Positions 1-61,700 are shown, counted from the stretch's first letter. The stretch is DNA of 64,000 bases from Glycera tridactyla (GCA_965644265.1 OZ286459.1:108810001-108874000); one strand, 5' to 3'. Translations and numbers: made by a program. The notes: generated by a model from the sequence alone, not told the origin.

Positions 1-1435
1 ACAGAACTGACCAAAATATATGCCAGTGGCTCAGCAGTCACATTTGAAAATGATTCCATTTCTTGAATGAACTGGAAGCTGTCATAACTACAGTAAGCAA
101 GGATCAGTCATTGATAAAACAGATTTCTATTGGAAATCCAAGTTTGGATTTAAAACATTTTATAATAACACACAGTGTCTTTCCGTATTCTTCAAATCTG
201 TTAATTGAATTGATCTATCTCATATTCCTGCTGCAATTGTGCTAAATTTCCTCCAGAAACCTGTAGTTCACTCCAGTAATTGACAAGTCAAATGAAAAAA
301 GTTCAAATTTTATTTCAGAATTGGTACCAAAATACTTTGGTGATAGTTTGCAAGGAGACTGCGTGGAAAAACAAGCGATGAAGTCTACTCAGTTGAAAGC
401 AGAACACTCAAGAGAACCTTACTCTACACACATTTTGCAGGATGAAAAAGGTTGCATTTGCGAGGTCCATGTGGCGGGAATAAAGAAGTAGTACTAGTAG
501 TAGCATTCCCAATGAGTTGGATCATATCTCAGAGACTCTCAGAAGTTTTTACCTAATTTCGCTATTTTTACGTAACCGCCTGTAAGACAAGGTCATTGGA
601 TTATTTTTAGTTCCAGATTTCCCACGGTTGTCACTATCAACTGGGTGTACATTTTCTACCTCTTGGATGAATCTTACTTCAAAATAGCATGATTAATAAT
701 CACATGAAAATAGAAACAATGAACATGAGAGTGGGTGGCCAATCGAACCAAAAACAAACACTATCAGAGACCTGTTTCCAACAAGTTTCAAGATGACATG
801 ACCAATCCCAGTATACAGCTGACATTACCTTGATGACTATGTGTTGATGGGATATCTAAGAATATTCCCATTTTACTCAAGTTTCCGGCATCGTTTCAGA
901 AACCAGTCATGTCAGAATAGAGATAAAAAACCATGCCTGAGATCTCTGTGACCACATCAAGCCCTTGAAGCTAGCAACACATGAGGCAAGGACTGAGTTT
1001 TCAGAACCCCAATCAGGGCATTGAAAATAATGAAAATATCTACTGCATCAATTTCCTTTTCAACTAGAGGTAGATGAAATCTCAATAAATATATATGTGG
1101 CTTAAAAGTGATGATGCTTCCTATTGTCTCTAATATACTGTATTCTCTCTCCGATTCTGTGGCAGTATACCATGAATCGACATACAGGAGACAAAAAGTC
1201 TGCTTGTATCGCTCCATATTGTCCACATGTTAGTAGGTGGTGAACACTAGTGACTCGGGAGTTGTATGGCCACCTTTGAGTGAATGTTTCAAACATGGGT
1301 ACAATAAAATGCATGCACACATACATTAAATCAATCTAAAATGCACTTAAAAATGTATTTTCACAAATGTCATGAGGACAACATAATTCAAACACATGAC
1401 ACACAACATGCACTGGAGAAACAGATGATCCAGAA

Positions 1436-1639
1436 GTGCCATCTAGTGTACAGTAGTAGATTTGCAGTGATGTGGTTTGACCACTGAGCTCCATCTAGTG
1501 AGGGTTTCCAGAGTGCTGCCACCTGGTGCGGTGGCTGATAGAAGAAACATCAACCAGAAAAAGTAACGAAAGTGACATCATCACTCAGAGATAGTTGTCT
1601 TCTGATGAAAAGATTTCACAATCAAAAGCCACCTAGTGG
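1436..1639 (-). promoter_or_regulatory. Cluster of four co-oriented CTCF-like motifs
   Basis: Minus-strand ACACTAGATGGCAC (1449-1436), TCACTAGATGGAGC (1501-1488), GCACCAGGTGGCAGC (1529-1515) and CCACTAGGTGGC (1639-1628). Confidence 0.55.
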
Positions 1640-2981
1640 CAGAATTGAGAGTTGGAGACACTGAGAGAGAATATCGATTGAAACGGAAATGAACCTTCAT
1701 GCAGCTTGCATGATGAATGGAAAGCATACTGGCACAGCCAGGGTAGGTCCACAGAGCCGAATGCTCTGCTATATGCAGAGTGACATCTTGTGGAAGATGA
1801 GAGAGCAATGCCAGCAATATCCATGATCTTTAATCTAGCAGTGACAGAGAAGGAGAGGAGAGTGGCTCTAGATGAGATCAGAGAGAATAACAATCAGGTA
1901 ATAATTTAGTTTTACATTTCTCGATTGCATCACCTATCCTGAAATAATACCTAGCATATTCTTTCTCCACAATTTTTACAGTAATTAGAAGTGCATTATT
2001 TATATCAAACACATTTTGCTGAGACACACTCACATATTTGTATTACTGCTCCATCTAACATACTACACAGATTGATGAACATAAAATAATGATCCCGAAT
2101 GAATAAGATGATGACATCGCTTTGGAGTTCACATTCAATCGTTGCAAGCCAGGGGGAATGGGAACATAATACGGGGCTCTTTCGATTACTTAGGGTTCAT
2201 CAATTGTCAAGAAAGACTGTCTGTTTGATACTCAATAGAATTGAATTTAATTAGTGATGCAGTTAATGGGCCAATGATTTTTGGATGTCTGATGGATTGA
2301 GCTCCATACTCACCAGGATAAACTGCAAAGTCTGATGACGGATTATAGTTAGAAATTGTATCCATGGAAGATTCATGCTATATCCCACAGATGTTTGATC
2401 TTGATAAGGTTGAATCACACCAAATGGAATATAACTTGAATATTTCACAGGCATAATCTCTTGCTTTTATACCACACATATCAATCACAATGTAACATTC
2501 CAGCATGTAGGAGGTGGCAATTATATTCCTAGTGGGCACATATGGGAAATCCTGTGCTGTGAGATTTCTTCATTTGCCCAGAAAACTAAAGTGTGCTGGT
2601 CATTGCCGAATCATGGTGATATTTCTGATGTCTGATAAAGAACCAATTGGGCACATTCATGAGTAAACCAAGCTCCATTTTTTCATTTAATGTGCGCCGG
2701 ACATAGCTTAGGAATATCTCTACCGTTACACCAATAGCAACCTCCTCTTCCAAGATATTTGTGGTATAAAGCCTATTTCACTAGTCTACAGAAACACCCT
2801 TCTCATGGTTCTAGATGTTTTCCATCCCAGAAGATAATTTGTGAATCCAAAAGATATCAGCGGAAATACAAGGTCATCCCAAGCTCATGTGAACTTCATT
2901 GATGGAGTACAAAATGGACAGTGAGCATATAATCACTCTGACATCTGGGGTGGTGAAATCAAGATTCATACTTTAACAAAC

Positions 2982-3191
2982 TTTATTATTATCCAGGGAG
3001 CAGAGGGAAAGCAGGCTGTGGGCTAAAAACATTTAATCTGAATGATCTTTGCTGGCTGGCTGGCTGAAAAGAAGATATACATGATCCACCTAGAGCCAAA
3101 TACTCGGAGGTGCCAAATAAGGAGAGCAAGATGAGAAGTTGGGGGAGAATGAAGGAGTGTGAGAGGTCTGCTGACGAGAAGCAGGAGTGAT
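2982..3191 (-). other. Candidate alternative terminal or poison exon: acceptor at 3191, in-frame TAG at 3092-3090, AATAAA at 2987-2982
   Basis: CACTAAC-acttgctttctctcttcag|ATC. Phase-0 reading gives 33 codons and then TAG. Confidence 0.45.
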
Positions 3192-5781
3192 CTGAAGAGA
3201 GAAAGCAAGTGTTAGTGATTGAAACGATGCCAGTCATGGAGTGTACTAACATCAGGCGAGCGAGTGAGTGAGAGTTCTCGGATCACGTACATGATCCCAT
3301 TCACAATTATCATACCGCATCAATTTCTTGATCAAATTATCAATGAACAAAGGCATACAAAAGAAACACAAGTACTACATTCAAAACAATGACTAAGTGG
3401 GCAATGGTAACTTATGTATGATTATTTGCATCAGTTCTCTCATTGTCACATCCACGTCTCCCAACCAGAACTTACAACTTCATCCAAGTTCAAACAAGCC
3501 TTCAGAAGCTTTGCCATATAAATGAAAATAAATCTAGGCATCATAATTGATTATCACAGAATTGCATGAAGGGTGTTCAAAATATGGGGCATATATCCTA
3601 AGATACTCAAGGATGGGGTATTTCAAATTTGAATTAAGCCAATGAGGGGAGCTACTGCTCACCGGGCAACTACAAAGAGAGCCAAAATGAACTGATATTT
3701 CAAATGTCCGGCAATATCTGTCAAAAAAGGCCGATATCTGAACAGAAGTTGTCCCAATCTTTATGTAACACTGTGATCTGAAATAATATAACCATGCAAT
3801 ATCTTGTGGTTGGGAATTGGCTTGATGCAACAATGAGAGAGGTCTATGGTTGGGCAAAATACCATGATACTTCTTATGGATCTAGGGGGCTAGTGAGGAT
3901 GGATACAGAGTGAAAGGTATGTACACATTACAGAGCATCCTGTAAGACTTCCATGGACTCTCACTAGTTTGAATCCTTTTGCAAATCTCACAGGATGGTG
4001 TAGAATAGGCTTTGAGTCTTATTCTCGTACCACAGATATAACTAAATATTAGCAGACATATTCCAACAGAAAATTGTATGTGTCTATATGGTACAGCCCA
4101 GAGCCTTACAAGTACCCGAAATCAAGTTCAGTGTCCAGATGAACTATGCCCCATCCGGGCATGGTCTATGGATTTCCTGTCATCAGGAATACGATGAGGA
4201 CACCATACATTCTTGATCTTCCATTACTAATGAAACGTCAAATCTGTGGTAAAATAGCTCTACTGCTGCATATGACTGACAACCTTTATCAAGACAAACA
4301 CTAAGCACTTCGACGTTGTATCAAATTGACACTTGCATTGTCAATTGATTCTGTTCACTTTTCACCTGTGCCATTTTCAACGATTGGTTACTTTCAAAAA
4401 TGGCTGGGATCACTTGCCTACAAGAAAATTCCATGTCATCTGAGCACATTTTATTTGCCCCAATTAACCCCCATCAGGGAGATGATAAATGATCAAAATT
4501 TCAGCTTGAAACTAATTCTGGTGATCTGAACATGCAAGTGTCAATCAGTAGAGGAATGGTACTGCTGGGTTGTATCAAGGAAAGGTACAACCCACTGCAT
4601 TATTTTCCTTTGCATCAATTCTGTTAGGATAGTTCATGCTGTGAGAGTGGCCCTAGATATTTCATTTGGTGCTACAAGCTTCATAACTAAGAAGGCATCC
4701 ACAAACAAGCATCCCTTTGAAAACTTGACGAATGAATGTCATCCAGAAAACCGGAGTATAATTTTCAAGTCAAACTTGAAGTTCTAGTCAGATTTTAACA
4801 AATTCTGAATTCTTGTTTTTTACGTAGTTTTTGAAAAAAAAAATCTCATCACTGGATACCATCTTTAGGCAGGCATAAACCATCAAATTTGTCTATGATT
4901 AATGACAAGCAGGCTACATGTATTATGTAAGGTGAGGTAGAGAAAATGCAGCTTTATTTTAATTCAAAAAAGAGAAAATGCAGCTAAATAGTTCCCAAGC
5001 ATGTGCAAAAGTTACTGGTTCCCTCATTTAATGTGCACTAACCCATTATGACAGGCAGGAAACTTTCATACTACAGGGATGAAGATGGTGACTGATATCC
5101 AAGCTTCAAGAGCAATACTTTCCTTGGAGGATGCATCAGAAGCTCCATTACATTACATTAATGTGCGCAACATTAAAGCTCAGCCATCACAAGAAACTGT
5201 TACCAAGTGTAAATAGCTTGGCCTGGTGGGTACGAAATGGCTTTTGGAAGATTTTCGAATGGGATGGAGTGATATCAGCTTTAAACTCACATCAAACAAA
5301 GTGCTCACCTTGAACACCAAATGTAAAATGAGGGGAAAATTTCAGGATGTATAGTGGCAAACTTGCAAACCACTTAAACTGCCCAAAAAATGAGAGAAAG
5401 TGACACTTCCATATCTGAACTGATGAGAGGGAAAATAATTTCAATGAGGTAACATTGAGTGTAATAGTCTGTTCTATTCAAGAGATCTCAGTCTCCCCTG
5501 GAGTTACTAATTTTGCAAAAACCGACCAGACTGAAGCAGTGTGCAAGATGCCTTAGAAGCAGCATCTAGAATTTGCAAGTATTGTGAACTGGCTTGACCA
5601 TGTTTTGAAACAACATTCTTGATCACAAATGTTTCTAGTGAAAAGATAAAAAGGAGGAAATAAGCTGCATTCAGACCGATTAAAAATCTACACAGCTTAA
5701 CATGCAACAGTTGGCAGTTTGGTTCGGAGGTGACCCATTATCCTAGTTCTTTGTCCCAACAATATTAGAGCACGGTAGTAC

Positions 5782-5813
5782 CTCGTAACTTTGGCGAGGC
5801 TGCGAGGTGAAAC
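5782..5813 (-). other. Candidate 32-nt exon VSPRSLAKVT, resembling the start of vertebrate PTBP1 exon 11
   Basis: tttctcatcacag|GTTTCACCTCGCAGCCTCGCCAAAGTTACGAG|gtacta. The donor is weak. Confidence 0.25.
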
Positions 5814-6700
5814 CTGTGATGAGAAACCACTCAACAAAACCAACCTCTCGTGGGGCAGCACTTGCCTGGAACAGCTTCGCTATTTGACAATATTTCCTCT
5901 AATGTGAGGTCATTTCCTTTGAAAGATTGGGTGGCATTTAGGGTGGTCTCCCATCACAGGTTTCACGTACTACTAAATAGCAATTATAGTCTTGATAATC
6001 TCTGCCACCAGCACTGGATAACTACCTATAGGTCCAATTATGCAGAATGATCATCCCACTTAAATCTGAACATACAAGTGATTGATTGATTGATGGAGCA
6101 TAAAACAGACAATGGCATAAATTCTTCACATATATATGGCCATCCATCTTTTTCCCCATGTTTTTAAACTCAATATGACAATACATGGCATTTCTAACTC
6201 TGAACCTGAAAAATATGGAAGAAATATTTATGTCCACATATCCACATAGGCCAATTTTCCATATGACCAATGGATGTCTCCGTAGACAGATTAGACCATA
6301 ATGTGGTGGTGCATGAATTGACTGAAAAATGATCAACAATCTTTTTTTTTCTTTTCTGATCAACAATCTTGTATGTTCAGACAAACGCATTTCCAAAAGC
6401 AAAAATGGGTATGAGCATACACAGCCCATACACACCTCATTACTATCTTAGCACTTCACAGCAGGTCAGCATGCAGTCAAAAGGTCATCTAAACTACATG
6501 ATGGAAGTTACCATTGCCCACATAATGTCCGTACAAATACAGATTCACATAAAATTTACATCACATTTCTTTCAACAATTGAAAATCTCAGTTTTGGTCA
6601 AAGAAGAGACAGACAGCTCAGGGGGATGAGCATGAGTATGAAAGACATTATGAGCTTGGTCTGAGGTGTGCAGGTGTGAAGACACTGGTGTGAGTCCTAC

Positions 6701-6834
6701 CTGCTCATTGAGGTTGGAGACGAGAAGCACTGGTCCAGTGGCGGGTTGTCCTGGCATGCGCATGCCCGCGGCACCGAGAGCTTGTATGTGCTGTGCTGGC
6801 AGTCCAAGGCCAAATGGTGATGCCGCCGCTGCTG
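6701..6834 (-). CDS. PTBP1: PTB coding exon, end of linker and RRM3 beta1 (134 nt, phase 1-0): AAAASPFGLGLPAQHIQALGAAGMRMPGQPATGPVLLVSNLNEQ
   Basis: Acceptor atgttcag|CAG, donor CAG|gtagga. VLLVSNLN is the PTB RRM3 start. Confidence 0.95.
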
Positions 6835-8651
6835 CTGAACATATCAAGAACAATCAGTCAAAATCAAAATCACCCTGGTAAATTCGAAATAATGAAACAT
6901 TCATTCAATTCCAACACTGTTAAACGCAAGTCATGCGGACACATTATCCGTAATCCAGTGCGATATCACAAAAATTTCCCTCATATAGTCTCCAATGCAT
7001 CTGATTCCAGCTGATTCCGAATTTTAATTCTTGCATGAAAATGAGCATCAGAAATGCAGTGATGCAAGTGCATAAAAACTAAATTTCCTGAAACCTGACC
7101 TAATTCCCTGAAACGACACCCCTATACTTGGATTTTGAATTTCGTGACTAATTTCCTGAATTCAGGAAATTTCCTGAAAATTGGAAATGGAAGCCTGATT
7201 TATGAAATTTTGGCTACCATATATGAACCAATATGGAGCACTTATGAAGTTGGAGACATTACATGTGGTAAGGCGATGGTTTCGTGTAAATTTATTGTGA
7301 GCAAGCATGATCCCAGCTGGATCAAACACAGATGCTTCATCAAACATCGAAGCTGGAAATTCTACTGAAAACAGGTGCAAGTACTGCTTTCACATGCATC
7401 CATTACAAGTTGCATCTGAAATATCTGCCCTGGCTAGTTGCATCACTGCAAATATGGTGAACTTTGATGTACCATTCATAATATCGCTCTTCTAAAGCTC
7501 AATAGAAGTAGTAGCTGCGATCAATGTCGAGTGAAAAAGTGGAAATTTTTGGAAGTAGTGAAATGCATATACGACATAGATTTGGTCATCCAGATACACC
7601 CAGGCAACACTGTGGATGGTATTTTGAGAATAGATCTGGCTGCACATGCAAACTAAGTCACTCCTGAATGAGAAAACTTCTCAGCCTATGACTGGTCAGC
7701 ACCGACGAACCTATTTAAATCACGACATCAACCAATAAATTATTACATGTATGCAATGAGACCAACGAGTGAGACCAATCGACATGTAGAAAATCACACC
7801 TAGCTTTGAGAAAATGGAGGAACGCTAAGTTACTCTAGTGTCAAAGACTGATCCTGGACATAAATTATGGTACTGCATCAAACTTGATGTAACTCGCCAA
7901 ACAAAATGTGTCAAGGTAGTCAAAAATTGGCCTGGGATGAGTCTGTTTGTAGCATAAAACAGACCACTTTGATCAAGCATATACCCCAATAATGCCAAAA
8001 TCAATATTTGAGGACTTTAGTATGGGAGAATTAAGAAGTCATTGGGAACAACAAAAACTGACAAAGGCTCAGAGATATCACTTGCAAAAATTATGAGAAT
8101 GAAAGTTTTGACTGATGATTCTCATTGCCATGTGCTCTGTGTGAGTCATAAAATTCTCTAAAGCAGCATGATAACCAATAGTGTGAAAAATGTTCAAATG
8201 TTTTGAATAATTGAAAAATCTAAAGATGATGGATTGATCTGAGTGTGGATTTTGGTATCCAAGACACCAGACAGAGTTGAAGTTGGATGCGAAAGCTAAT
8301 CATTTCATCAAGATGAATAAAAAACCAAGATGAGATCCGGAGTCGTAGAAAATACCTGAACTGGGATGTCAACCACTGATCATCAAAATGTGATTATTTC
8401 AATTTCAGAAAATCTAATGATATGAAATAGTTTTGGGGCAAAATGGACTGTTGTGAATATTATGATATACAATCGAATAATCACCAAACTTATCATATCG
8501 ATAACCTGACAAATATGTGAGAATAGATCCTATGTTATAAAGAGACAAGTTGAGAACCGAGAAGAGACCATCGATAGAACAGATTGAAGAGAGACAGAGG
8601 AACCAAGAAGTAGTTCATGCAACACACGATGGACGGAATTAGTAATCTTAC

Positions 8652-8678
8652 CTTGCAAACCTAGATGAGGTTGACCAG
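8652..8678 (-). CDS. PTBP1: 27-nt microexon (phase 1-1): (A)GQPHLGLQ
   Basis: Long tract ttctcttctgttttttcttttcattcactccag|CTGGTCAACCTCATCTAGGTTTGCAAG|gtaaga. Stop-free in the PTB frame. Confidence 0.75.
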
Positions 8679-8944
8679 CTGGAGTGAATGAAAAGAAAAA
8701 ACAGAAGAGAACCCCATTTTATACATCACCACTGTCAGCGGGGACAACACATACAATCAGTACATCGACACCGAATACACAAATATGGAAATCGAAATCT
8801 AATATTAGATTGGGCAAACCATGTGTGTCAAGCAGCACTTTTTCTCCTAGTTAGGATTTTTCAACAATCAATTAACGACATGGGATTCTGGGGCATGGGG
8901 GTTCTTTATGAGTGAGCAAATTATGCTGGAAATGAAATTCTTAC

Positions 8945-8986
8945 CTTTGTTCATGACCGGTTCCGGTCGATCCATGACTTACTGAA
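8945..8986 (-). other. Candidate regulated exon with one donor and three acceptors: 42 nt (in-frame TAA), 37 nt (frameshift) or 33 nt (in frame, MDRPEPVMNK)
   Basis: Pyrimidine tract ctgtccatcctccctttcccccAAG-ttCAG-tAAG and strong donor AAG|gtaaga at 8944. Confidence 0.6.
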
Positions 8987-10173
8987 CTTGGGGGAAAGGG
9001 AGGATGGACAGTAAGAACTAACTAAATAAATGTAATATGTGGATGGTGAATGAACTAGCTAAGTACGGATGACAGTGTATACAGATCACAAGGCCACATT
9101 TAGCAAATGTCCAGTAGCCCCTGTTTTATTTTTTTATTTTTCCAGTAGCTGTTTCACAAAAGCATAAGTGCCCTAACACTGATGTAATCAGTTGATAGCA
9201 GTTATCAACTGTTAGCAACAATTTTGAACACTCAAACTTCACTGAAATGGGGCTCCGTGGACATCCCGGCAGCATTAGTGACAGTAGCCATAGCCACAAC
9301 AACCACAATATAACGAGAAACATGCTGTAAATACACATTGCAGGAAAAATCCAGCGATACAATGCCAAAATTTATAATTCCCACAATTATTCACATATGC
9401 TCTTTGTAAGCCTCTGTAAATATTTGAGGAAACAAAATTAACTTTGAACTTCTAAACAAATCATAACACAGACACCAATATTTTTTGCAGACTACCCACC
9501 TGACCTTCAAACAAGTCACAGAAAAATCTTTCATATTATTTATTTTTCAACTTTTATTGGAGGGGGGGGGGGGGGGGGGGCATATATTTTGATGAGCATT
9601 TGCTGATAGTCATAGCTGGATCATATAAGATATCACAGTCAAATGCAAAGCAATGACAATACTGACTTCGGTGATAAACTATTATCACTGCTCATTGAAA
9701 TTGCTGCAATGTTATTCTAAGCCCAAATAAGTTTCACCAGACTATATGATCTCTGCAGTAAGATAATCATTTCCATTTGCACCAGCAAGCTTTCAAAATC
9801 TGGTGCTTGGTTCAATGACAGTTTCATGAATGGTCTTCATTCCAGGAATGATATTCACTGTTGAGACAGCACTCATGAATTTGATTCATGAAATATGCAC
9901 AAAGAGATCCAAATGACAGTCAATCTTCTATAGAGTCATCCAGAGCAGAAACATATAAGTGCGTAATAACAAATATCAGGTACAGGGAACCAACTCCTCA
10001 TCCTATTGTTACCAATCTGTCAGACCTAGACTATTAGAAATAAATTTTGAGAGCTACTCCAATGAGATATAAGTCATATCGATTACTAGAGTAACACTCA
10101 TTTTTGCACATCACACTGATGAAATGTCGCATACAGAAAACACTTTGGGGACTGATTATGGTAACAAACATAC

Positions 10174-10191
10174 AGTGGGTAGGGTCGAGGG
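10174..10191 (-). CDS. Candidate 18-nt microexon (phase 1-1), (A)LDPTH. An upstream in-frame acceptor at 10230 would give 57 nt.
   Basis: Branch ACTAAC, then cttcgtcccacctccag|CCCTCGACCCTACCCACT|gtatgt. Stop-free in the PTB frame. No homology recognised. Confidence 0.5.
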
Positions 10192-10820
10192 CTGGAGGTG
10201 GGACGAAGTTCACCATGTTAGTTCTCACTACTAGCAAATGAATTTGCTGGATCTGTACACATGTCGTCTGTTGCTAGATGATTCATCTTCACATGATACT
10301 GATGGAATGGGTGTGCTTGTGCACGGCCGCTCACCAAATAAGCATGCAGATGTGCTGTGAGCAAAATGTGGAGGGATGGAAACAGAGTCAAAGATCACTC
10401 TTAAGCCAAATTATTCAGCAAGAATTCCCATCAACAGACTGTTCTTGCTGGCCTGTGGTCTAGTTTCAATAATCTATAGATGTCTATAGCTTGAAATCCA
10501 ATAAATGTGGCAGCATTTTCGCAGCACCTTAACACCAAAATTGGCAAAATTGAGTGAACATCTAGGAAGCAGGATCTCCAAATGAAAGGAAAGAGCCTGC
10601 TGATTTTTGAGAATAATACTGCCTCAACTACTAGCAGTATCATCAATTAAATTTATTGTTTTAAAATATCATCAAATTACAAAGATTTCTTCAATCGGAA
10701 TACACTCCACATTGAGCTAACATTGGGCAGACAAATAGGGTTTAGTAGTAGCGTAAGCAGGTGGCTAGTTGAAGGGAAAGCATGGATGGCTGATTGATAA
10801 GCGGTAAAGCGGGTGCGTAC

Positions 10821-10901
10821 CTCCTAATCCTGGCCCGTACGCTGTTAGTTGAGATCCAAAACCCGGCATTGCAAACGGTGACGCCAGCACACCGGGGGCA
10901 C
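10821..10901 (-). CDS. PTBP1: Linker cassette exon (81 nt, phase 1-1): (S)APGVLASPFAMPGFGSQLTAYGPGLG, homologous to vertebrate PTBP1 exon 9
   Basis: Acceptor gtgaag|GTGCCCCCGGT, donor GAG|gtacgc. Stop-free and frame-preserving. The peptide resembles GAPGIISASPYAGAGF (recalled). Branch-like AACTGAC lies about 25 nt upstream. Confidence 0.85.
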
Positions 10902-12622
10902 CTTCACAATCCGGGGCAAATAATAGTCAGTTAAAACATGCTATTAATAGCACAAAAACAGCAATTAACAGTGGTACGCAGCATGTAGGCGGCCAATATT
11001 TCCACCCAGCTCATCCCCACACTTGAAATCAAACACAATAAAGCTTTTCACCCAAAAACATTCACATTTTCACTCCAAGAGGAAAGGCAATGGATGCCAG
11101 CCAGACTGCAGAAAATGTTGATGTTTTTGAGAACAGGGCATCAACTGGTAGTGCCAATGTATAAAACTAAATCAAGAATGAATATTCGATCAAAATAACA
11201 GGGCGCTTCCCACCAAAGTTGTCTGAAATTGGCAGGCAGTTGGTAGCCAAGGTGTCTACACAAAGTGAAAGCATATCTTCAGTGAAATGGCCTCAAGCTT
11301 TTTGAAAATGCTTCACTAATTTCTGTGTGTAGATCATAGTATTAGTTCTTTGACAAAGATATGATTTGTATGTGAGCAAAACATTATGACTCATATTCAA
11401 GGGGTAAATGGAGCTAATTCAGCAGGGCATCCTTATCAAATGCCTCCAAGATCCCTTTCATTTCACGAGCTTAACCCTTACTGTGTCATATTCTCTTAAA
11501 AATGCAACTACATTTCATCTGCCACCTTCAGTAATTTGGTATTTCTCTACGTCCATTATTCATCATGTCTTTCTTAAATTCTGAAAGATTTTGAAGATGG
11601 CAATACAAATGTACATCCATGGTACACTTAATGAACCACTGAATAGAAGACAGTCAGCAAAATCTTTCTTTGACTGAAATCAACTGCCAACATTCACACT
11701 GAAAATATAGCTTTAATATCTCCACAGAGGATACACAGAAACGTCACTCAAGTGAGCTGTGAATATCTGCCAAATATGGCTGACTTAGGAATTCAACTTT
11801 CTCATACCTATGACCAGATTTTTGAGTGGGAAAATCGTGATACTTTATTCAAGCCATCTGAGAACCATCTGGTTGCAACTTTCCATGGAATGATGAGACT
11901 GATCATAATTTACGAGATGAAAGATGTGTGGTCCAGGATGTGCAGATACCTGAAAGGCTGATCATGGAAGGCAAGACAAAAGAGAAATGTTAGCAGTCCA
12001 AATTCACCATCTTACAGAGAATCTGATCAGATGATCGATCACAAGAAGTACGATTGGTTCTCTTGATGCACGAGTTAAGCTCTTACAATAGGAGCTGTTA
12101 CATGATGACGACATGCAAAGAAAGTCTCCGGTAGAAATAACAAGATGCACTCTAAAGAGATTCATCTATTCAGGGTGATGTATTTATAATGATTAAGGAG
12201 CTTATCAAAACATCTGCTATAGTGTGCAAGCACAACTCTGTGACCAACAGATGCACGGCCTAGCAGGTATCCCAATAACCAGTGAACACCAGTAAGGGTT
12301 AAGACTCATCTTGCATCTAGATTTAGTTACACAAATACAGAGGCCAAATAAAAGCATTAGGCATTTATTGCATAAAAACAAAACTGATTCCATAGTATAT
12401 TCCATGCTAAGTTGACTAAGTGAAAGGCAAATACGCCATACATAATCACCTATCTTGATTGTCAACTGAGCTTGAAATGTACTACCCCTAAATATGGTGA
12501 CACAGGACTAGAACTGCATTCCCACAGGGTACAATTCTAGACATACATTTTTCAAGACAACATTACTGTTGGTAGTGACATAGTGAGAGAGGTGAGAGTG
12601 AGCCTATACACGATATGTATGC

Positions 12623-28351: not shown

Positions 28352-28510
28352 NNNNNNNNNNNNNNNNNNNNNNNNNNNNNNNNNNNNNNNNNNNNNNNNN
28401 NNNNNNNNNNNNNNNNNNNNNNNNNNNNNNNNNNNNNNNNNNNNNNNNNNNNNNNNNNNNNNNNNNNNNNNNNNNNNNNNNNNNNNNNNNNNNNNNNNNN
28501 NNNNNNNNNN
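28352..28510. other. Assembly gap (N run)
   Basis: 159 N following a CA repeat. Confidence 1.
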
Positions 28511-43284: not shown

Positions 43285-44028
43285 TGATATTCCCTGAGAT
43301 GCAGGTTTTAATTTTCACATAGTTCCAGGAAGTGCCTGGAGTATTATATCACAGCATCCTTTATCAGAAGTTCCCTTATCAAAGGGCAGATGTTTGGCGT
43401 CAGCCCCCCCCCCCCCCCACCATAGGGGTGGGGGTGGTGTGGGGAGGGGGGTAGCAGGGTCTCTTGTGTCCATTAACTGCTGCACCCGGCTCCAACCATC
43501 ATGCCTGATATCAAATTATGCAGCCATTACATCATGCTGGAAACCCCACCGGGGATCTATTACACAGAGACCCATCACAGCTTCAACCACTCACCCCAGC
43601 AGGCCTATCAGCAGGACCTGCTTCTGCTATGAGGCCCTTTCATATGTCTACACTGAGTTCATGTTCCTCTGCCATTATCAAATTCTAGGACTTACTGGCA
43701 ACCATAAGAGGCATCTGATTCTTTTGTCAGGAGTATTCAACAAGTCGGTTCAGAATGTTTTTAAGGATTGTGTGGGTCTCAAAGTTCCCATTGCACATCA
43801 ACCAAATAAATCTGAGGAGGGGGGGGGGGGGGGATCCGTTAAGTTTGAACAGCTTCTCAATCTGGATTTCGCCTGCAAATTTCCGCCACTGGTCGTCGAT
43901 TCTTACTGAGGATTTCACTACACTGACAGCAAAAAAATCTTGTGTATGAATTGAAACAACCTCCACAAGGAATCAGATGATTTCTGAAAATGTAATCTCT
44001 ACATTACAATGATGTATTGTGAAGTATA

Positions 44029-46193: not shown

Positions 46194-47040
46194 TGGTAAG
46201 ATTCAGCAACTGACAATAGCTTCACTCCTATTCCATTCCTTCAATTCTATTCCTGGCATGAAAAAATAATTACCAAAAGAGTGAAACTAATTTAATCAAA
46301 TAACTTGTGCTGGCACCTACCTCAGAACAAAGTCTCTTATTTAATTAATCACACGGGTTTCCAAAAAAAAAAATGCATCTTTTCTCACACCGCAGTAACA
46401 TCAATACATCATGCCTATATGGGAGCCACAAAAAGATGATGGTGTCTTCTAAAAGGCAGCAAGATAGTCCCAGTTACTTATATCACTGTATATAGAATTA
46501 TTGGAGGGGAAACAACCACTTTATGTCCCATCTGTCCATCCACCCCCTCCCCATACTATCAAATTTATTTCTGAATATTACTGTACCATCAATGATTTTA
46601 ATCCCATCGGTATTTGGCACTCTGCACATCCAAGAATGCTGAAAAATCTACCAGGCCCAGAAACTGCAACATAAATATTCAGGTTGCAAGGGCCAAGTCC
46701 TGTGCACCAGAATGCCTGGAATTTTAGCAAATTTTGTTCATAGACCGAAGTTTTGTTGCACAATTTGACAATCATGCTAGCCTGATTACTGAATAAATGA
46801 GAGCAAGGACGGGAAGCAAATGTGTTGAGTGAAGGTTATCCACAGTGTCACCATTTATTGATCCCTGAAGCCTGCCTGAATCCTCTACAATATATCCCCC
46901 TTCAACATTGATCCAACCCATAAAATTACCACCTATCACATCATGTGTAGAGAACATGGCTTACTATCTAATATGCCTGGGGGTAGGATGGTTGGTTGAT
47001 TGGCTGATGTACAACGGCATGTGTCAGCCCAAGGATTATG

Positions 47041-52203: not shown

Positions 52204-52334
52204 NNNNNNNNNNNNNNNNNNNNNNNNNNNNNNNNNNNNNNNNNNNNNNNNNNNNNNNNNNNNNNNNNNNNNNNNNNNNNNNNNNNNNNNNNNNNNNNNN
52301 NNNNNNNNNNNNNNNNNNNNNNNNNNNNNNNNNN
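52204..52334. other. Assembly gap (N run)
   Basis: 131 N. Confidence 1.
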
Positions 52335-55732: not shown

Positions 55733-58700
55733 TACAGGGTCTGACCCACCATGGGATACAACCTTTATATCAGCTCCACTAACCTCTAAAAGACCAACCA
55801 TTATATTTTCTGTGCTTTCATATCTGAAATTATTGTTGGATTCTGTTGTTCCATAACATGTTTTTTTCGGCAACACATATTCTATGTGTGCATGTGCACA
55901 TGCTCATGTATGAGTATGCATAGGTGTTCATGCATATATGCACACAGCTAGCTGCGTATGTGGGCAGGCACCCTGTGTATTTGCACAGTGGAGTGTATTT
56001 ACTCGAAGTAAGCAATCCAGCTAGTTACATACATAGCATGTATCACATCAGCTGCAACAGGTGTGCCTGCATTCGTTTCAGGTACAGACAAAAGGGCCCC
56101 CACCCACCACCTGCCCTACCCCCACCCACCCAACCACCCAATATGCCTGCTTTGTGCCACATGATTAGGCCCTGCACATGAAATATCGCCTTCATCCGAA
56201 TCATGACCACCTTCATCAAAATCCGTGACAGATTGATATGAATAAGATGACAGACAGGTAGTGCTGCAATATAGCAAGAAACCATTATAACTTCATCACA
56301 TGAAATTGCTATGAAGTCCAGGGTTTTCAATTTTTTATAGGTCTGGTTGATAATCAATCATCCTGATAATATTTCAAGAAATCCTCAATTCAGAGAACTA
56401 TAAATATGGTAAATTTGAAAATTTGTCTGTTTCAGTTTGAAGGAGAGATGGATAATCAACACAATCGACACATGGAGAGTTCAAGGGGAAAACCAGTGAC
56501 ACAGGTGTGTTTATACTGGAAGGATTTTAACATCAGAACTGCATCAGATTCCTGAATATAGTGACTGGCTATACCCAGCCAATGTATATTCATCAATTCA
56601 ATTCAATTTAAAATTCTTCATTTTCACTGTATTCATGCAGGACATAGGCAACTACATAACAGGCTGACAATTGATCTCTATATTATAACAATTAATCATA
56701 AGGGGGAGCCTAGTCCATGGGAGGGGGGGGGGCATACCTATCCTCCTAGGGGAGCCAATCATCACTGCAGGGGCAATCATCTCTGCTGGGCCACCATAAC
56801 CATCACTGCAGGATGCCCAATCATCCCTGGAGGGGCACTGTCATGATCAAACTAAGGGGTCATGTTAGGGCACAGTCAACACAGGAGGGGGGCACAGTAA
56901 CTGAGATAGGTGGGGGCTACCTTTACCTAGATGTAGAACCATAGCAGAACCCTAACATTGCCTGGGTTATTGCCAATTAGAAGTGACATTTCGGTCCATC
57001 AGGAAGGGAACATCCTGCCAATTATCAGAGACAATAGATGAAATCCTAGGGACAAAAAGTCCGTGGTATATGCCATCCACATGATCTCAAACATGACCTC
57101 CCTGATTCTGGAGCAACGATGAGCTAGTGCATGAATACAATTCAGAATTCATCAATTGATACAGATGACCTTTGGGAAGAGAGAACTAGCTTGCATGATT
57201 TCAAGAATAGCAAAAAATCTTGACAAGTTTCATCGGCACTGACCAAATATAATGGCGCCATCTGTTAGAAATCATCTGAACATTGTGGGGAATTGTATAA
57301 AATATGAAAGCGAGCCCCGGCCAATTCAATATTGTTACCATGAACTGAGAAGGGTTTTTTCATCTTTTTGTATTCTCTCATATGGAGCCGATGGAATTAG
57401 CCAGATTTGATTCAGTACAGGTAAAATCGGACTGACAATGATAGAGCCATTGCCTTTCTCAGGTTGCACTTCTGTATTGTGAATTTTCATATGGATGTAC
57501 TTTACCGTTTTGTTATTTTTCTCACAAGTTTGGAATCATATTTCAGCTTCCCAGAACAATGGAGAAAGGGGATTCTCAAAGTTTAGTGCACTTTTGAGCT
57601 CTCTGAGATCAAATTTGAAAGTAATGCTTGGATTGCTCACCCAGTATTGTGCTATGACACCATCAAATAAGTCAGTTTTCATGATACTAACTTAGCAGGT
57701 CCAATTATGAATCAGTGAATACCCTTCGCGGATGTTCAGTTCTCTGTAGTGGACCTGTGTGGTTTCCCCCAGTTCTTTGAAAGGCCGTGCAACTGTACAA
57801 ATCAAAAGCCTATTTTCGAAGAGGTGCAGATAGTATTCTCTCGTTCCCATGAACCTGGGATCACACCTTTCTCATGATAAAAGAATCCTGGACATGGGTT
57901 AACAAAACAGGTATGGCTGGTGGATCAAATGAACCTGATTATACACATGATGGTGGGAGGGTAGTATCATTTGGCCATTGTGCCACCAAACTGTGTGTGA
58001 AATATCTGGTCAAAGGAATCAAGCTGAGTCTTGACATTGTTCCGGTACAGTTTGATGAGAGAATGGAGGAGAATGATGAGGCATTTCACTTGGACATTCC
58101 CATGTTCAATCCATATTTTGAGCCACTAATTCTGTCCAAAATATGTAAGGAACTCCGCACAAAATCTCAACATCTTCAATAACTTGGATGACCGAATCTT
58201 GTTGTTTACCCATAATGTGTGGGTATGATAGTTTTGCGGTATATGCATATAATAGATGCCAATCATTAAAGGACAAAAATAGTAGTGGTGCCAATTTTGC
58301 CAATTTCAAAGAGTACCTATGCCCATATTTGCAATAGGATGAGAAAATTCTTAATTTTGCAGATGCATCACGAATAAAATGCAATAGTTGTGGCCTGAAG
58401 AGAGAAGTTAGTGCTTCAATATAGCAGCGGTTGGCATGTATGGGGTATATATGTGTACTAGTATAAAGTGAGGAATGAACTTGTGAATATATCAAACTGT
58501 GTGGTATTGTGTGATATATGAGAATATGGAGCATACGGAAGCTGGCATGTCCTCCATCCACTCCATCAGCCCTGCCATTACACTCAACACCACTGAACCT
58601 ATCTGATATGTCACATCTCACTGTGAAAATAAATCGCTACCTAACCCTCCCCGCTCTACCCCACCAGCCAGACCCCTGGTCCTGATTCCTATCTTCAGCA

Positions 58701-61700
58701 CTTCTTCTATCAAGGATGGCAGGCAAGTCCTACTGCTTGCACGGATGCTATATCTCTCTAAGTCAACCTCTGGTTATTCTGTGAGAAGAATAAAACAGAT
58801 CACACCAGGTATGTGATTGGCTCACAATCAAAACCCCTGAAAACTAGATTTTGTGAGCTGCGCAACCCGAACAACTGCTAATAATCATAGCTACTAAAAC
58901 TGCATATACTTAGTGCTCTATCTCCACTAATTCTGGTCAGATTTTCATGATCTAAAATCCATAATATTTAGCATAAAGTGCTCTTCCGTGCATACAGAAC
59001 TTACAAAATCAGGGATGCTAATCTTTGCAGAATGTAATTAGTTATGATGGCAATTTCCAAAAGTAATGATGGTAGCAGTTGCAATAATAAAATAAGAGGA
59101 TTATGAAATTCTTGAGAGTGATGTCACTCGTAAAATGCCAAAATTTTGGCTCAGAACGGGTAATCATTGACCACATCTCTGAGAAATGCATTTATTCGAA
59201 GGACCGACTTCATCAATGGTTAGGTTAGTAAGTCTATACTGGAAAGAAAATATCCGCAGACCAGCCATCAATAAACTGATTGCAGTTTACTGATAAAAGT
59301 AATATCTGGACATTTTTGTCAATCACATTCATATTATGCAGCAAAATAGACACTTATTTTCCTGCAAGTATCAGATGAAACTACATGATTACTTGGTCAA
59401 GGTGTGTTCAATGAGTCTAGTGGTGCCTGAGATTTTCAATTAATGTTAAAAATGTCAAAAACTGATCATAATGATTTAGAATATGTAAGCAATCTAATCC
59501 ATCCAGAGTTTCTGCTATCTATATGGCCACCACAATATTCATTGTGATGACACACACAGTGTAGAGCATTATACAATACTGAAAATTCCCAGTCACATGG
59601 ATATAAAACTGAATCTCATTAGTCATTTTCCAAGCATGCCATGAGTTGGGGTGAGATATTCAAATCCATATTCTCCAAACTTTGAGTGGAAAGCCATGTA
59701 ACTTTGACAGGAACCTGTCTCTACAGAACAATTTGGCATCAACGAGGGAGAGTATGAAGAAGAAATATGGGGTGGAATGATGTGGATTAATTACAGCATG
59801 AGTATATGAGGCGAACCTCACCAACCCCTGGCATCATTCAAGCTCGTTACAAGTGCTTGCAAGGCCATTAGGTTTCACTAAATCTAAATGGTGTGAGATT
59901 CACACATATACAGGCATCCTTAGATGCTTTCTAGCTTTCTGCCTCTCTTGGGAAGGCCTATTCCATGAACTGCAGCAGAATTTGCTATCAGCAGCTCCTG
60001 TGTGTCAAATTACCCAATATTAGGGTGCGTGACCTTTTGGGGCATTTATCAATATGTGTAACTTGATTGCTTCTTGGTAACTTGATACTTTTTTTGGCCA
60101 GTGAGATGTTGATTTCAACCAATACTAAGAGGGTGCTGCCCATCTGCGAAGCCCCCCCCCCCCCACCCCCACCTAATCTACTTGCAGGAGTGCTGCCCCA
60201 TCTTCAAAAGGCCTAAAAGCTCTACTTTACTTACTCTGCATTGTTCATGACACTAGATATGCCCTCCTCACATTCACCTAAATAAATTGTCTGAATGCAC
60301 AGAGACTAATATATGGATAATACAAGATCGGTGCTTGTGCTTTGTGACTCCATTTTCAAGAGAGATATCCCATAATTTGAAGAAATGGGAGACAAATTTA
60401 CCCTATCCAGTTGCATTTAGGTGGAAAACTGCAATTGGGTAGTTAAAAGATTTGGGAAATTTAGGCAGGACATGGTGCGTTCAGACTGTTTTTTACTTAT
60501 AAAAATTTCTGGTGAACACATGACTCAAATGTGTGCGTATGTGCACACACACATGCACACACACACTGAGCTAGGGTGTAATCTTGGATACATCAGATGG
60601 GTGAGCTCTGCTGTCACTAAATGATAGCCCCTGATGACAAGAACAGGCAGTAGTGTACACACCAAGGCTGATGATGTTTTTCCAGCATCACCTACCCCAA
60701 GGCTAGAATAATATTTGATCATTTACAGAAACAACAGACCATAATGAATGAAAGCCCACTCATTACTTGCCTGATGGCTGTGCTGACCTTTCTCTGGGTG
60801 ATGGTAGCTACACATTCTCCAAGCATCTGGGCCCACGATAATAACACCACAACCAAGAGGCTTCCCATCATGCCACTATAAGTCTCTTGACTTCAGCCAG
60901 AAAAATCAAATCAATCAGTACAGTTACTGAATAATCTATACGATCAGTATCATTCAACTTTTTAGCAGTTTTCCACTATTTTAGAAAACATTTCCCAGAT
61001 GATTCCAGTAATCAGATTCAGAATTGGGAGGAGTGAAGTGTTCTGGCAATGATCTGAGATGATTGTCAGTCATGCAACAGATAAACTGGAGCCATGTTGA
61101 CAGTGTCCATTCACATGGACACAAATCCTATGTGACAATTTTTACACAAAGCAGAGATTTGAAAGTTTCAATTTGAGTATGAGGATTCTGAGACCCATCA
61201 ACTGATCTTTTGCGCACCATCTATCAAAATATATAAACCATCTTCAACATGGGAGTATTAATGGCACATGACCTAAACCAAATGAATTCTTCAAAACCAC
61301 AAGTCATTCAAAACCACACGAGTCATGTGAGCTGGAGGGATACATGACAAGTCTAGTGGGACTGACTATCGGAAAAAGGCTGGGACTATCAGCCTAGACT
61401 AGGAGCTCCATGAGTTTCAGTCAGCTGCAGGCTGTGATCAGAGTCAAACCAGCAACTAAACAACCCTAATAAGAAACCACCGCAGATATAAATCTAAATT
61501 GGATCTATCCAGCATGGCACCAACCATCATCTCATCTTGCCTGTGTATGAGCACACGTTCTGAGTTGTACAGTGTAAGAATCCCTATTCAAACCTGTTGA
61601 TCATGGATGCTCATAAGGATGTCATGATGTGTAGCCCTGGCTCCATCACAAGCTCTATGAACACTGAGAACAGGGAACCTATTTTCAAACAAAATCCCAA

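Follow-up and report, generated by a model that had tools for sequence, protein, structure and literature searches.

The question raised by this locus is how many optional small exons lie in the linker that joins RNA-recognition motif 2 to motif 3 (RRM2 and RRM3) of PTB, a master splicing repressor, in Glycera tridactyla. The original prediction for the 64,000-nt stretch of DNA analysed here, which we call the window, was that four small segments lying after the last RRM2 exon and before the first RRM3 exon are combinatorial cassettes giving up to 16 in-frame linkers, and that the 33/37/42-nt one among them additionally forms an NMD switch. Having examined the window alongside related genomes, transcript-like contigs and annotated PTB proteins, we favour, with a probability of roughly 70%, a reading in which the linker intron contains two genuine small exons, an exon-9 orthologue that is most likely a cassette and a micro-exon that is mostly or always included, while the other two segments are chance occurrences.

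Most of a PTB/hephaestus-type gene (polypyrimidine tract-binding protein, hnRNP I) is found on the minus strand of the window, in the order RRM1 (exons 62551-62402 and 38727-38599), RRM2 (29417-29289, 23483-23432, 21585-21527 and 15994-15820) and the start of RRM3 (6834-6701), with the remainder of RRM3 and RRM4 beyond the window start. No PTB-like sequence was found in window positions 1-6700, so the window stops within the intron that follows the first RRM3 exon. The exons align to PTB proteins and to the spliced contig L011, the RRM2-end exon included. When this last exon was compared with solved structures it matched RRM2 of PTB (1sjr, 2adb and 3zzy) with an E value of 1e-23, as against 1e-11 for hnRNP L, and the PTB-specific C-terminal extension of RRM2 is also present; identity to PTB proteins is 72-92%. 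Homologues of the first RRM3 exon were identified in five related genomes (L001, L002, L008, L009 and L010) and in three related transcripts (L011, L012 and L013). On sequence grounds we take the gene to be the PTB/hephaestus orthologue.

Other searches were less informative. Single exons were too short for Pfam scoring and gave a sub-threshold RRM_8 as the sole match. A word search with the RRM2-end exon returned short genomic ORF fragments only, none of them from Glycera tridactyla, and no matches came from the same type of search when the query was the ORF that surrounds the RRM3-start exon; a representative search yielded the backbone proteins along with the closest fragments (P0121, 90% identical), whose contigs (L004-L006) are only 3-8 kb long. 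We also observed two runs of N in the window (28352-28510 and 52204-52334) and, in one related genome, a place immediately upstream of the genuine RRM2-end exon where the beginning of this exon (SLNGQNI..) recurs in short tandem copies (L009:9687-10002).

Translation of the flanking exons bore out the phases that had been assigned to them. The last RRM2 exon, of 175 nt, begins in phase 0, encodes ...SALGFG and closes in phase 1; the first of the RRM3 exons, 134 nt long, is entered in phase 1 and encodes AAAASPFGLGLP...VLLVSNLNEQ; a codon is split between the two, the former ending on its first base and the latter opening with its last two. It is likewise correct, in coordinates and in arithmetic, that four small segments with AG/GT borders lie between these exons, each with an in-frame form, and this is one of the points in favour of four cassettes. 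However, the linker intron is 8,985 nt long and contains 467 AG and 543 GT dinucleotides, and approximately 420 AG..GT segments of 12-120 nt within it keep the frame and are stop-free in phase 1. AG/GT borders therefore carry little weight, and in this intron their possession together with an in-frame form is not beyond chance.

The splice-site pairs were scored with a crude matrix of general consensus frequencies, not trained on Glycera tridactyla, and were ranked among the 3,047 pairs of the linker intron, with dinucleotide-shuffled introns as the control. By this measure the 27-nt segment ranked 1, the 37- and 42-nt forms 2-3, the 81-nt segment 52, the 33-nt form 57 and the 18- and 57-nt forms 76 and 161, respectively. 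No pair reaching the threshold score of 18 was present on the plus strand of the window. Elsewhere on the minus strand, four AG..GT pairs (5309-5414, 43696-43811, 46321-46414 and 58665-58778) scored like the known PTB exons; these may represent exons that are not annotated, not translated or used alternatively, or may have arisen by chance. A run of 20 C bases is found in the linker intron at 9563-9582, and no repeats were found within the window around the four segments.

The 81-nt exon (10901-10821, minus strand) is bordered by AG and GT, is in phase 1 at both ends and encodes APGVLASPFAMPGFGSQLTAYGPGLG, which directly follows the ..ALGFG of the RRM2-end exon. It has the features of an exon-9 orthologue, being a separate exon after the end of RRM2, in phase 1 on both sides, of about 78 nt and with the motif APG..SP[FY]A. 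Exon 9 of vertebrate PTBP1 (exon 8 in mouse) is 78 nt long rather than 81 and has the same phase and the same place after ..AFG or ..GFG, and the longer motif APG[VI][LI]..SP[FY]A..GF is common to the two. Thus in the vertebrate hit P0146 the sequence APGII.ASPYAGAGF.. comes directly after ..AFG, and in vertebrate-type hits generally either APGII.ASPYAGAGFPPTFAIPQAAG is found right after ..AAAFG or the segment is missing. Two further hits, P0161 and P0162, resemble PTBP1 fragments from a mammal, possibly human. The arthropod PTB module GAPGVLASPFAAMHGL.. sits where the peptide of the 81-nt exon does and matches it, and among all of the linker sequences that we collected the exon-9-type module was alone in matching the window intron, with 55 matches. 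By position, phase and motif, we regard the 81-nt exon as the orthologue of vertebrate PTBP1 exon 9.

Homologues of this exon are present at the genomic loci of all five relatives, with lengths of 99 nt (L001), 93 nt (L002), 81 nt (L008), 87 nt (L009) and 81 nt (L010), so that the lengths range over 81-99 nt and every one is a multiple of three; a homologue was additionally found in L018. An AAG|GT acceptor and a GGAG|GTA donor are common to the 81-nt exon and its five genomic homologues. When the 9-kb intron was compared by blastn, nucleotide conservation was confined to the 81-nt exon and up to 48 nt of the intron upstream of it. In each of the six genomes the exon has a weak acceptor, with scores of 1.4-5.8 as against 12.9 at the neighbouring upstream exon. 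An intronic element, TTAATAGCATG (10937-10947, minus strand), is located 40 nt upstream of the exon in the window, and its pattern TAAT-N-GCATG occurs at -34 to -44 of the exon-9 homologue in the window and in each of the five related genomes. The element could comprise a branch-point-like TAAT beside an Rbfox-type GCAUG, and Rbfox may play a role at the 81-nt exon. Because the weak acceptor and the intronic element are both conserved, we infer that the 81-nt exon can be skipped in Glycera tridactyla, where it is probably a regulated cassette.

Metagenome contigs were scanned with the RRM2-end exon, which yielded 26 intron-less, transcript-like PTB contigs. The proteins encoded by three of these contigs, the related transcripts L011, L012 and L013, are by inspection about nine-tenths identical to that of the window across RRM1 and RRM2. 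L012 and L013 are 99.9% identical to each other over 829 nt, and an exact segment of 84 nt, GTGCCC...GGGAG, distinguishes the two; it is homologous to the 81-nt exon. This segment is found in L013 and also in L011 but is missing from L012, in which the RRM2-end exon is joined straight to the micro-exon described below. From its exact presence in one transcript and absence from the other we conclude that a close relative uses the exon-9 homologue as a true cassette. Alternative splicing is thus observed in the relative, and alternative use of the 81-nt exon is probable in Glycera tridactyla.

The observation bears on an alternative explanation, namely that both of the conserved small exons are constitutive in Glycera tridactyla, with a fixed, unregulated linker as the result. 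Non-mammalian vertebrates include exon 9 constitutively, according to the part of PMC12992808 that summarises Gueroussov et al. (2015), which would fit a fixed linker, as would the constitutive-strength splice sites of the micro-exon and the presence of its homologue in each of the three related transcripts. However, skipping of the 81-nt homologue in one of two near-identical transcripts, and the conservation of the weak acceptor with its upstream GCAUG, both argue for regulation, and shrimps, cockroaches, locusts and ticks have annotated isoforms with and without the APGVLASPF module. We therefore consider a fixed linker unlikely. Under the preferred reading, an ancient exon 9, with its conserved weak 3' splice site and TAAT-N-GCAUG some 40 nt upstream, would be either included or skipped, making the flexible linker longer or shorter by 27 residues, and the 27-nt micro-exon, with its strong splice sites, would probably be in most or all transcripts.

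L012 also differs from L011 further downstream. It can be seen that at L012:1540-1600 (Ga0210370_1058693) exactly the exon that follows NLNEQ, encoding MVTPDALFTLF, is missing; the reading frame is shifted as a result and meets a stop eight codons on. This skip is the invertebrate counterpart of the skipping of vertebrate PTBP1 exon 11 and PTBP2 exon 10, a 34-nt exon whose omission is reportedly an autoregulatory NMD switch. The 34-nt exon is outside the four proposed segments; no homologue of it was found in window positions 1-6700, and the exon lies beyond the window start. As it is this 34-nt exon that L012 skips, the stop-creating event seen in a relative is the known one and not the proposed switch exon.

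The second small exon, of 27 nt (8678-8652, minus strand), is in phase 1 at both ends, is bordered by AG and GT and encodes GQPHLGLQ. In addition to heading the ranking within the intron, it is the joint top pair of the whole 64-kb window together with a known RRM2 exon, and its score was reached by 3% of the shuffled introns; its splice sites are as strong as those of the constitutive exons. In four of the related genomes (L001, L002, L009 and L010) the top symmetric pair of the linker intron is again an exon of 21-30 nt, encoding LQVGALQ, GLGALQ, GFPSLQ and AAAGLPGLQ, respectively. Each of these counterparts ends ..CAAG|GT, and they always come after the exon-9 homologue and before the RRM3 exon. 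In L008 this place is taken by a candidate of 42 nt, the homology of which is doubtful. The three related transcripts all carry a 21-nt homologue, its peptide being AGMGALQ or AGIGALQ, but their number is too small to rule out rare isoforms. In L010 the homologue (6794-6823) opens with repeated CAG, and these may be tandem acceptors giving forms of 30, 27, 24 and 18 nt.

As judged by its splice sites and its conservation, the micro-exon is a genuine, conserved exon, and it may be constitutive, given that none of the three related transcripts lacks its homologue. The idea that the linker is built from extra small phase-1 exons is therefore upheld for the 81-nt and 27-nt exons, both of which are conserved in relatives. 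Their proposed use as cassettes fared differently: it was confirmed in a relative for the 81-nt exon by the comparison of L012 with L013, whereas for the 27-nt exon, retained in three of three transcripts, skipping found no support.

Neural micro-exons of the eMIC/SRRM4 type carry a UGC that follows the pyrimidine tract and precedes the 3' splice-site AG. When the final 30 nt of intron ahead of the micro-exon were inspected, no TGC was present in the window, L001, L002, L008 or L010, L009 alone having one, and without UGC the 27-nt exon was not assigned to this type. Downstream of the micro-exon is a CU-rich tract (8651-8532, minus strand) with nine UCUU/UUCU/CUCUCU motifs per 120 nt, which corresponds to the 99th percentile of the intron, and a TGCATG at +32 (8616-8621). 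Neither the dense CU motifs nor the TGCATG near the micro-exon are conserved in the relatives. The CU-rich flanks could provide added self-regulation by PTB of its own linker in Glycera tridactyla.

The remaining two segments gave a different picture. The 18- or 57-nt segment (10191-10174 or 10191-10135, minus strand) is bordered by AG and GT and has weak donors, and its 57-nt form encodes the hydrophobic LDPTHCMFVTIISPQSVF. The 33/37/42-nt segment (8977/8981/8986-8945, minus strand) has one strong donor, scoring 10.3, and three AGs. Its in-frame form is the one of 33 nt, which depends on the third AG, the weakest of the set (score 0.4); the form of 42 nt is interrupted by an in-frame TAA, and that of 37 nt alters the reading frame so that a stop is met at the end of the following exon. 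Smith-Waterman comparison of the 18/57-nt and 33/42-nt segments with the five related genomes gave nothing above shuffled controls, blastn of the 18/57- and 33/37/42-nt segments returned no block in the relatives, and no similar high-scoring splice pair was found there for either segment. The peptides of both were without a tblastn match in some 90 fetched PTB loci, including the 26 transcript-like contigs, and both segments are absent from the three related transcripts. The relatives are distant, with exons of about 80% DNA identity and introns that cannot be aligned, and at this distance a young lineage-specific exon would be undetectable by conservation.

These results speak against the reading in which all four segments are combinatorial cassettes. 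It could draw on the 37- and 42-nt forms being the second-best splice pair of the intron, and on the coexistence of four optional linker modules in decapod PTB annotations. Yet the in-frame 33-nt form rests on the weakest of its three AGs and the 18/57-nt donors are weak, the peptides LDPTH.. and MDRPEPVMNK are unlike the Gly/Ala/Pro-rich linker, and in five genomes, three close transcripts and 26 transcript-like contigs neither segment was encountered. Conservation of splice sites in relatives, which had been offered as the check, holds for the 81- and 27-nt exons and fails for the 18/57- and 33/37/42-nt segments. Since the latter two are without counterparts, neither four cassettes nor 16 linkers has support; the number of supported in-frame linkers is four at most, and we give the four-cassette arrangement, NMD switch included, only a very slight chance. 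Most likely the AG..GT borders of the 18/57-nt and 33/37/42-nt segments are paired by chance, and the second of these segments, for which support as a coding cassette is lacking, would at best be a candidate poison exon.

As such, the 37/42-nt segment (8981/8986-8945) would be a lineage-specific exon that lowers PTB output via NMD, in the manner of exon 9N of mouse Ptbp1. Along with its strong donor the segment has a CAG acceptor preceded by a good pyrimidine tract, and a premature stop results from either of its likely forms. In mouse, Rbfox promotes inclusion of the 56-nt poison exon 9N, and the minigene carrying 9N spans exons 6-9, so that 9N appears to be in the linker part of the gene (bioRxiv 10.1101/2024.09.09.612108); the mouse exon and the segment are thus both small, stop-creating and apparently in the same gene part. 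However, exon 9N is conserved in mammals and has two functional downstream GCAUG motifs, as shown with the minigene, and the 37/42-nt segment has none of these: it is not conserved, and no GCATG was seen, when the sequence was read by eye, between the donor at 8945 and the micro-exon. The score of the 37/42-nt pair was moreover reached by 43% of the shuffled introns, and the stop-creating isoform of the relative arises by skipping of the 34-nt exon. A poison exon at this position therefore seems improbable to us, and we retain the reading with two genuine small exons.

The original prediction also came with the remark that no description of an expanded linker of this kind was known. A profile search with a shrimp backbone and the window exons returned arthropod PTBs only and no annelid proteins. 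In NCBI predicted isoforms of Penaeus, Procambarus and Homarus the linker contains four optional pieces, a 30-aa exon-9 homologue, VSSLS, APNLNLPNRTGENATPTG and MPFTG, which are combined in at least ten ways, Penaeus chinensis by itself having six; for a single decapod species NCBI annotates as many as 49 PTB isoforms (P0236-P0293). Predicted isoforms of cockroach (Periplaneta) and locust (Schistocerca) have an ELLPQLLL.. module and an APGVL module, and those of ticks have an APGIL module and a DQFDKKQ insert. No ELLPQLLL-type module was found in the window intron.

Overall, the isoforms that NCBI annotates for decapods, insects and ticks have two to four optional linker modules, and arthropod hephaestus resembles the present gene in having several such modules between RRM2 and RRM3, with the exon-9 homologue either present or absent. 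The decapod piece MPFTG, of 5 aa, is located just before the RRM3 exon and so occupies the position of the 27-nt micro-exon, although the sequences are dissimilar, and whereas the predicted decapod isoforms have four optional pieces, two exons are supported in Glycera tridactyla. Our literature search found no paper describing a multi-cassette PTB linker; the arrangement is nevertheless already visible in public annotation, and the claim of novelty is weakened to that extent. We conclude that, apart from the exon-9 homologue, the PTB gene here is unexceptional and varies an established design in an ordinary way.

The exon-9 homologue is the part with wider implications. In mammals skipping of exon 9 weakens PTB repression and reshapes neural splicing, and in the portion of PMC12992808 that summarises Gueroussov et al. 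(2015) the skipping is called specific to mammals among vertebrates and is said to weaken repression. Mammals thus use exon 9 as a cassette, and a relative of Glycera tridactyla does so with the homologue of the 81-nt exon; the 81-nt exon might also alter the strength of the repressor. In mouse, Rbfox stimulates the inclusion of Ptbp1 exon 8 (human exon 9) via a downstream GCAUG (bioRxiv 10.1101/2024.09.09.612108), whereas at the 81-nt exon the GCAUG is upstream, near the presumed branch point. It is tempting to suggest, although we hold this only tentatively and consider it somewhat doubtful, that exon-9 skipping is an old or recurrent bilaterian feature, governed in a protostome clade by the upstream TAAT-N-GCAUG, where binding of Rbfox near the branch point would force skipping. 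If true, cross-talk between Rbfox and PTB via the linker exon would be older than the vertebrates; the site would lie on the other flank of the exon, and its effect would probably be the reverse. The evidence that exon-9 skipping extends beyond mammals, with a conserved upstream GCAUG, is the most interesting residue of this analysis: as an annelid and several other invertebrates possess exon 9, and some transcripts of a close relative leave it out, the age of the switch becomes directly testable.
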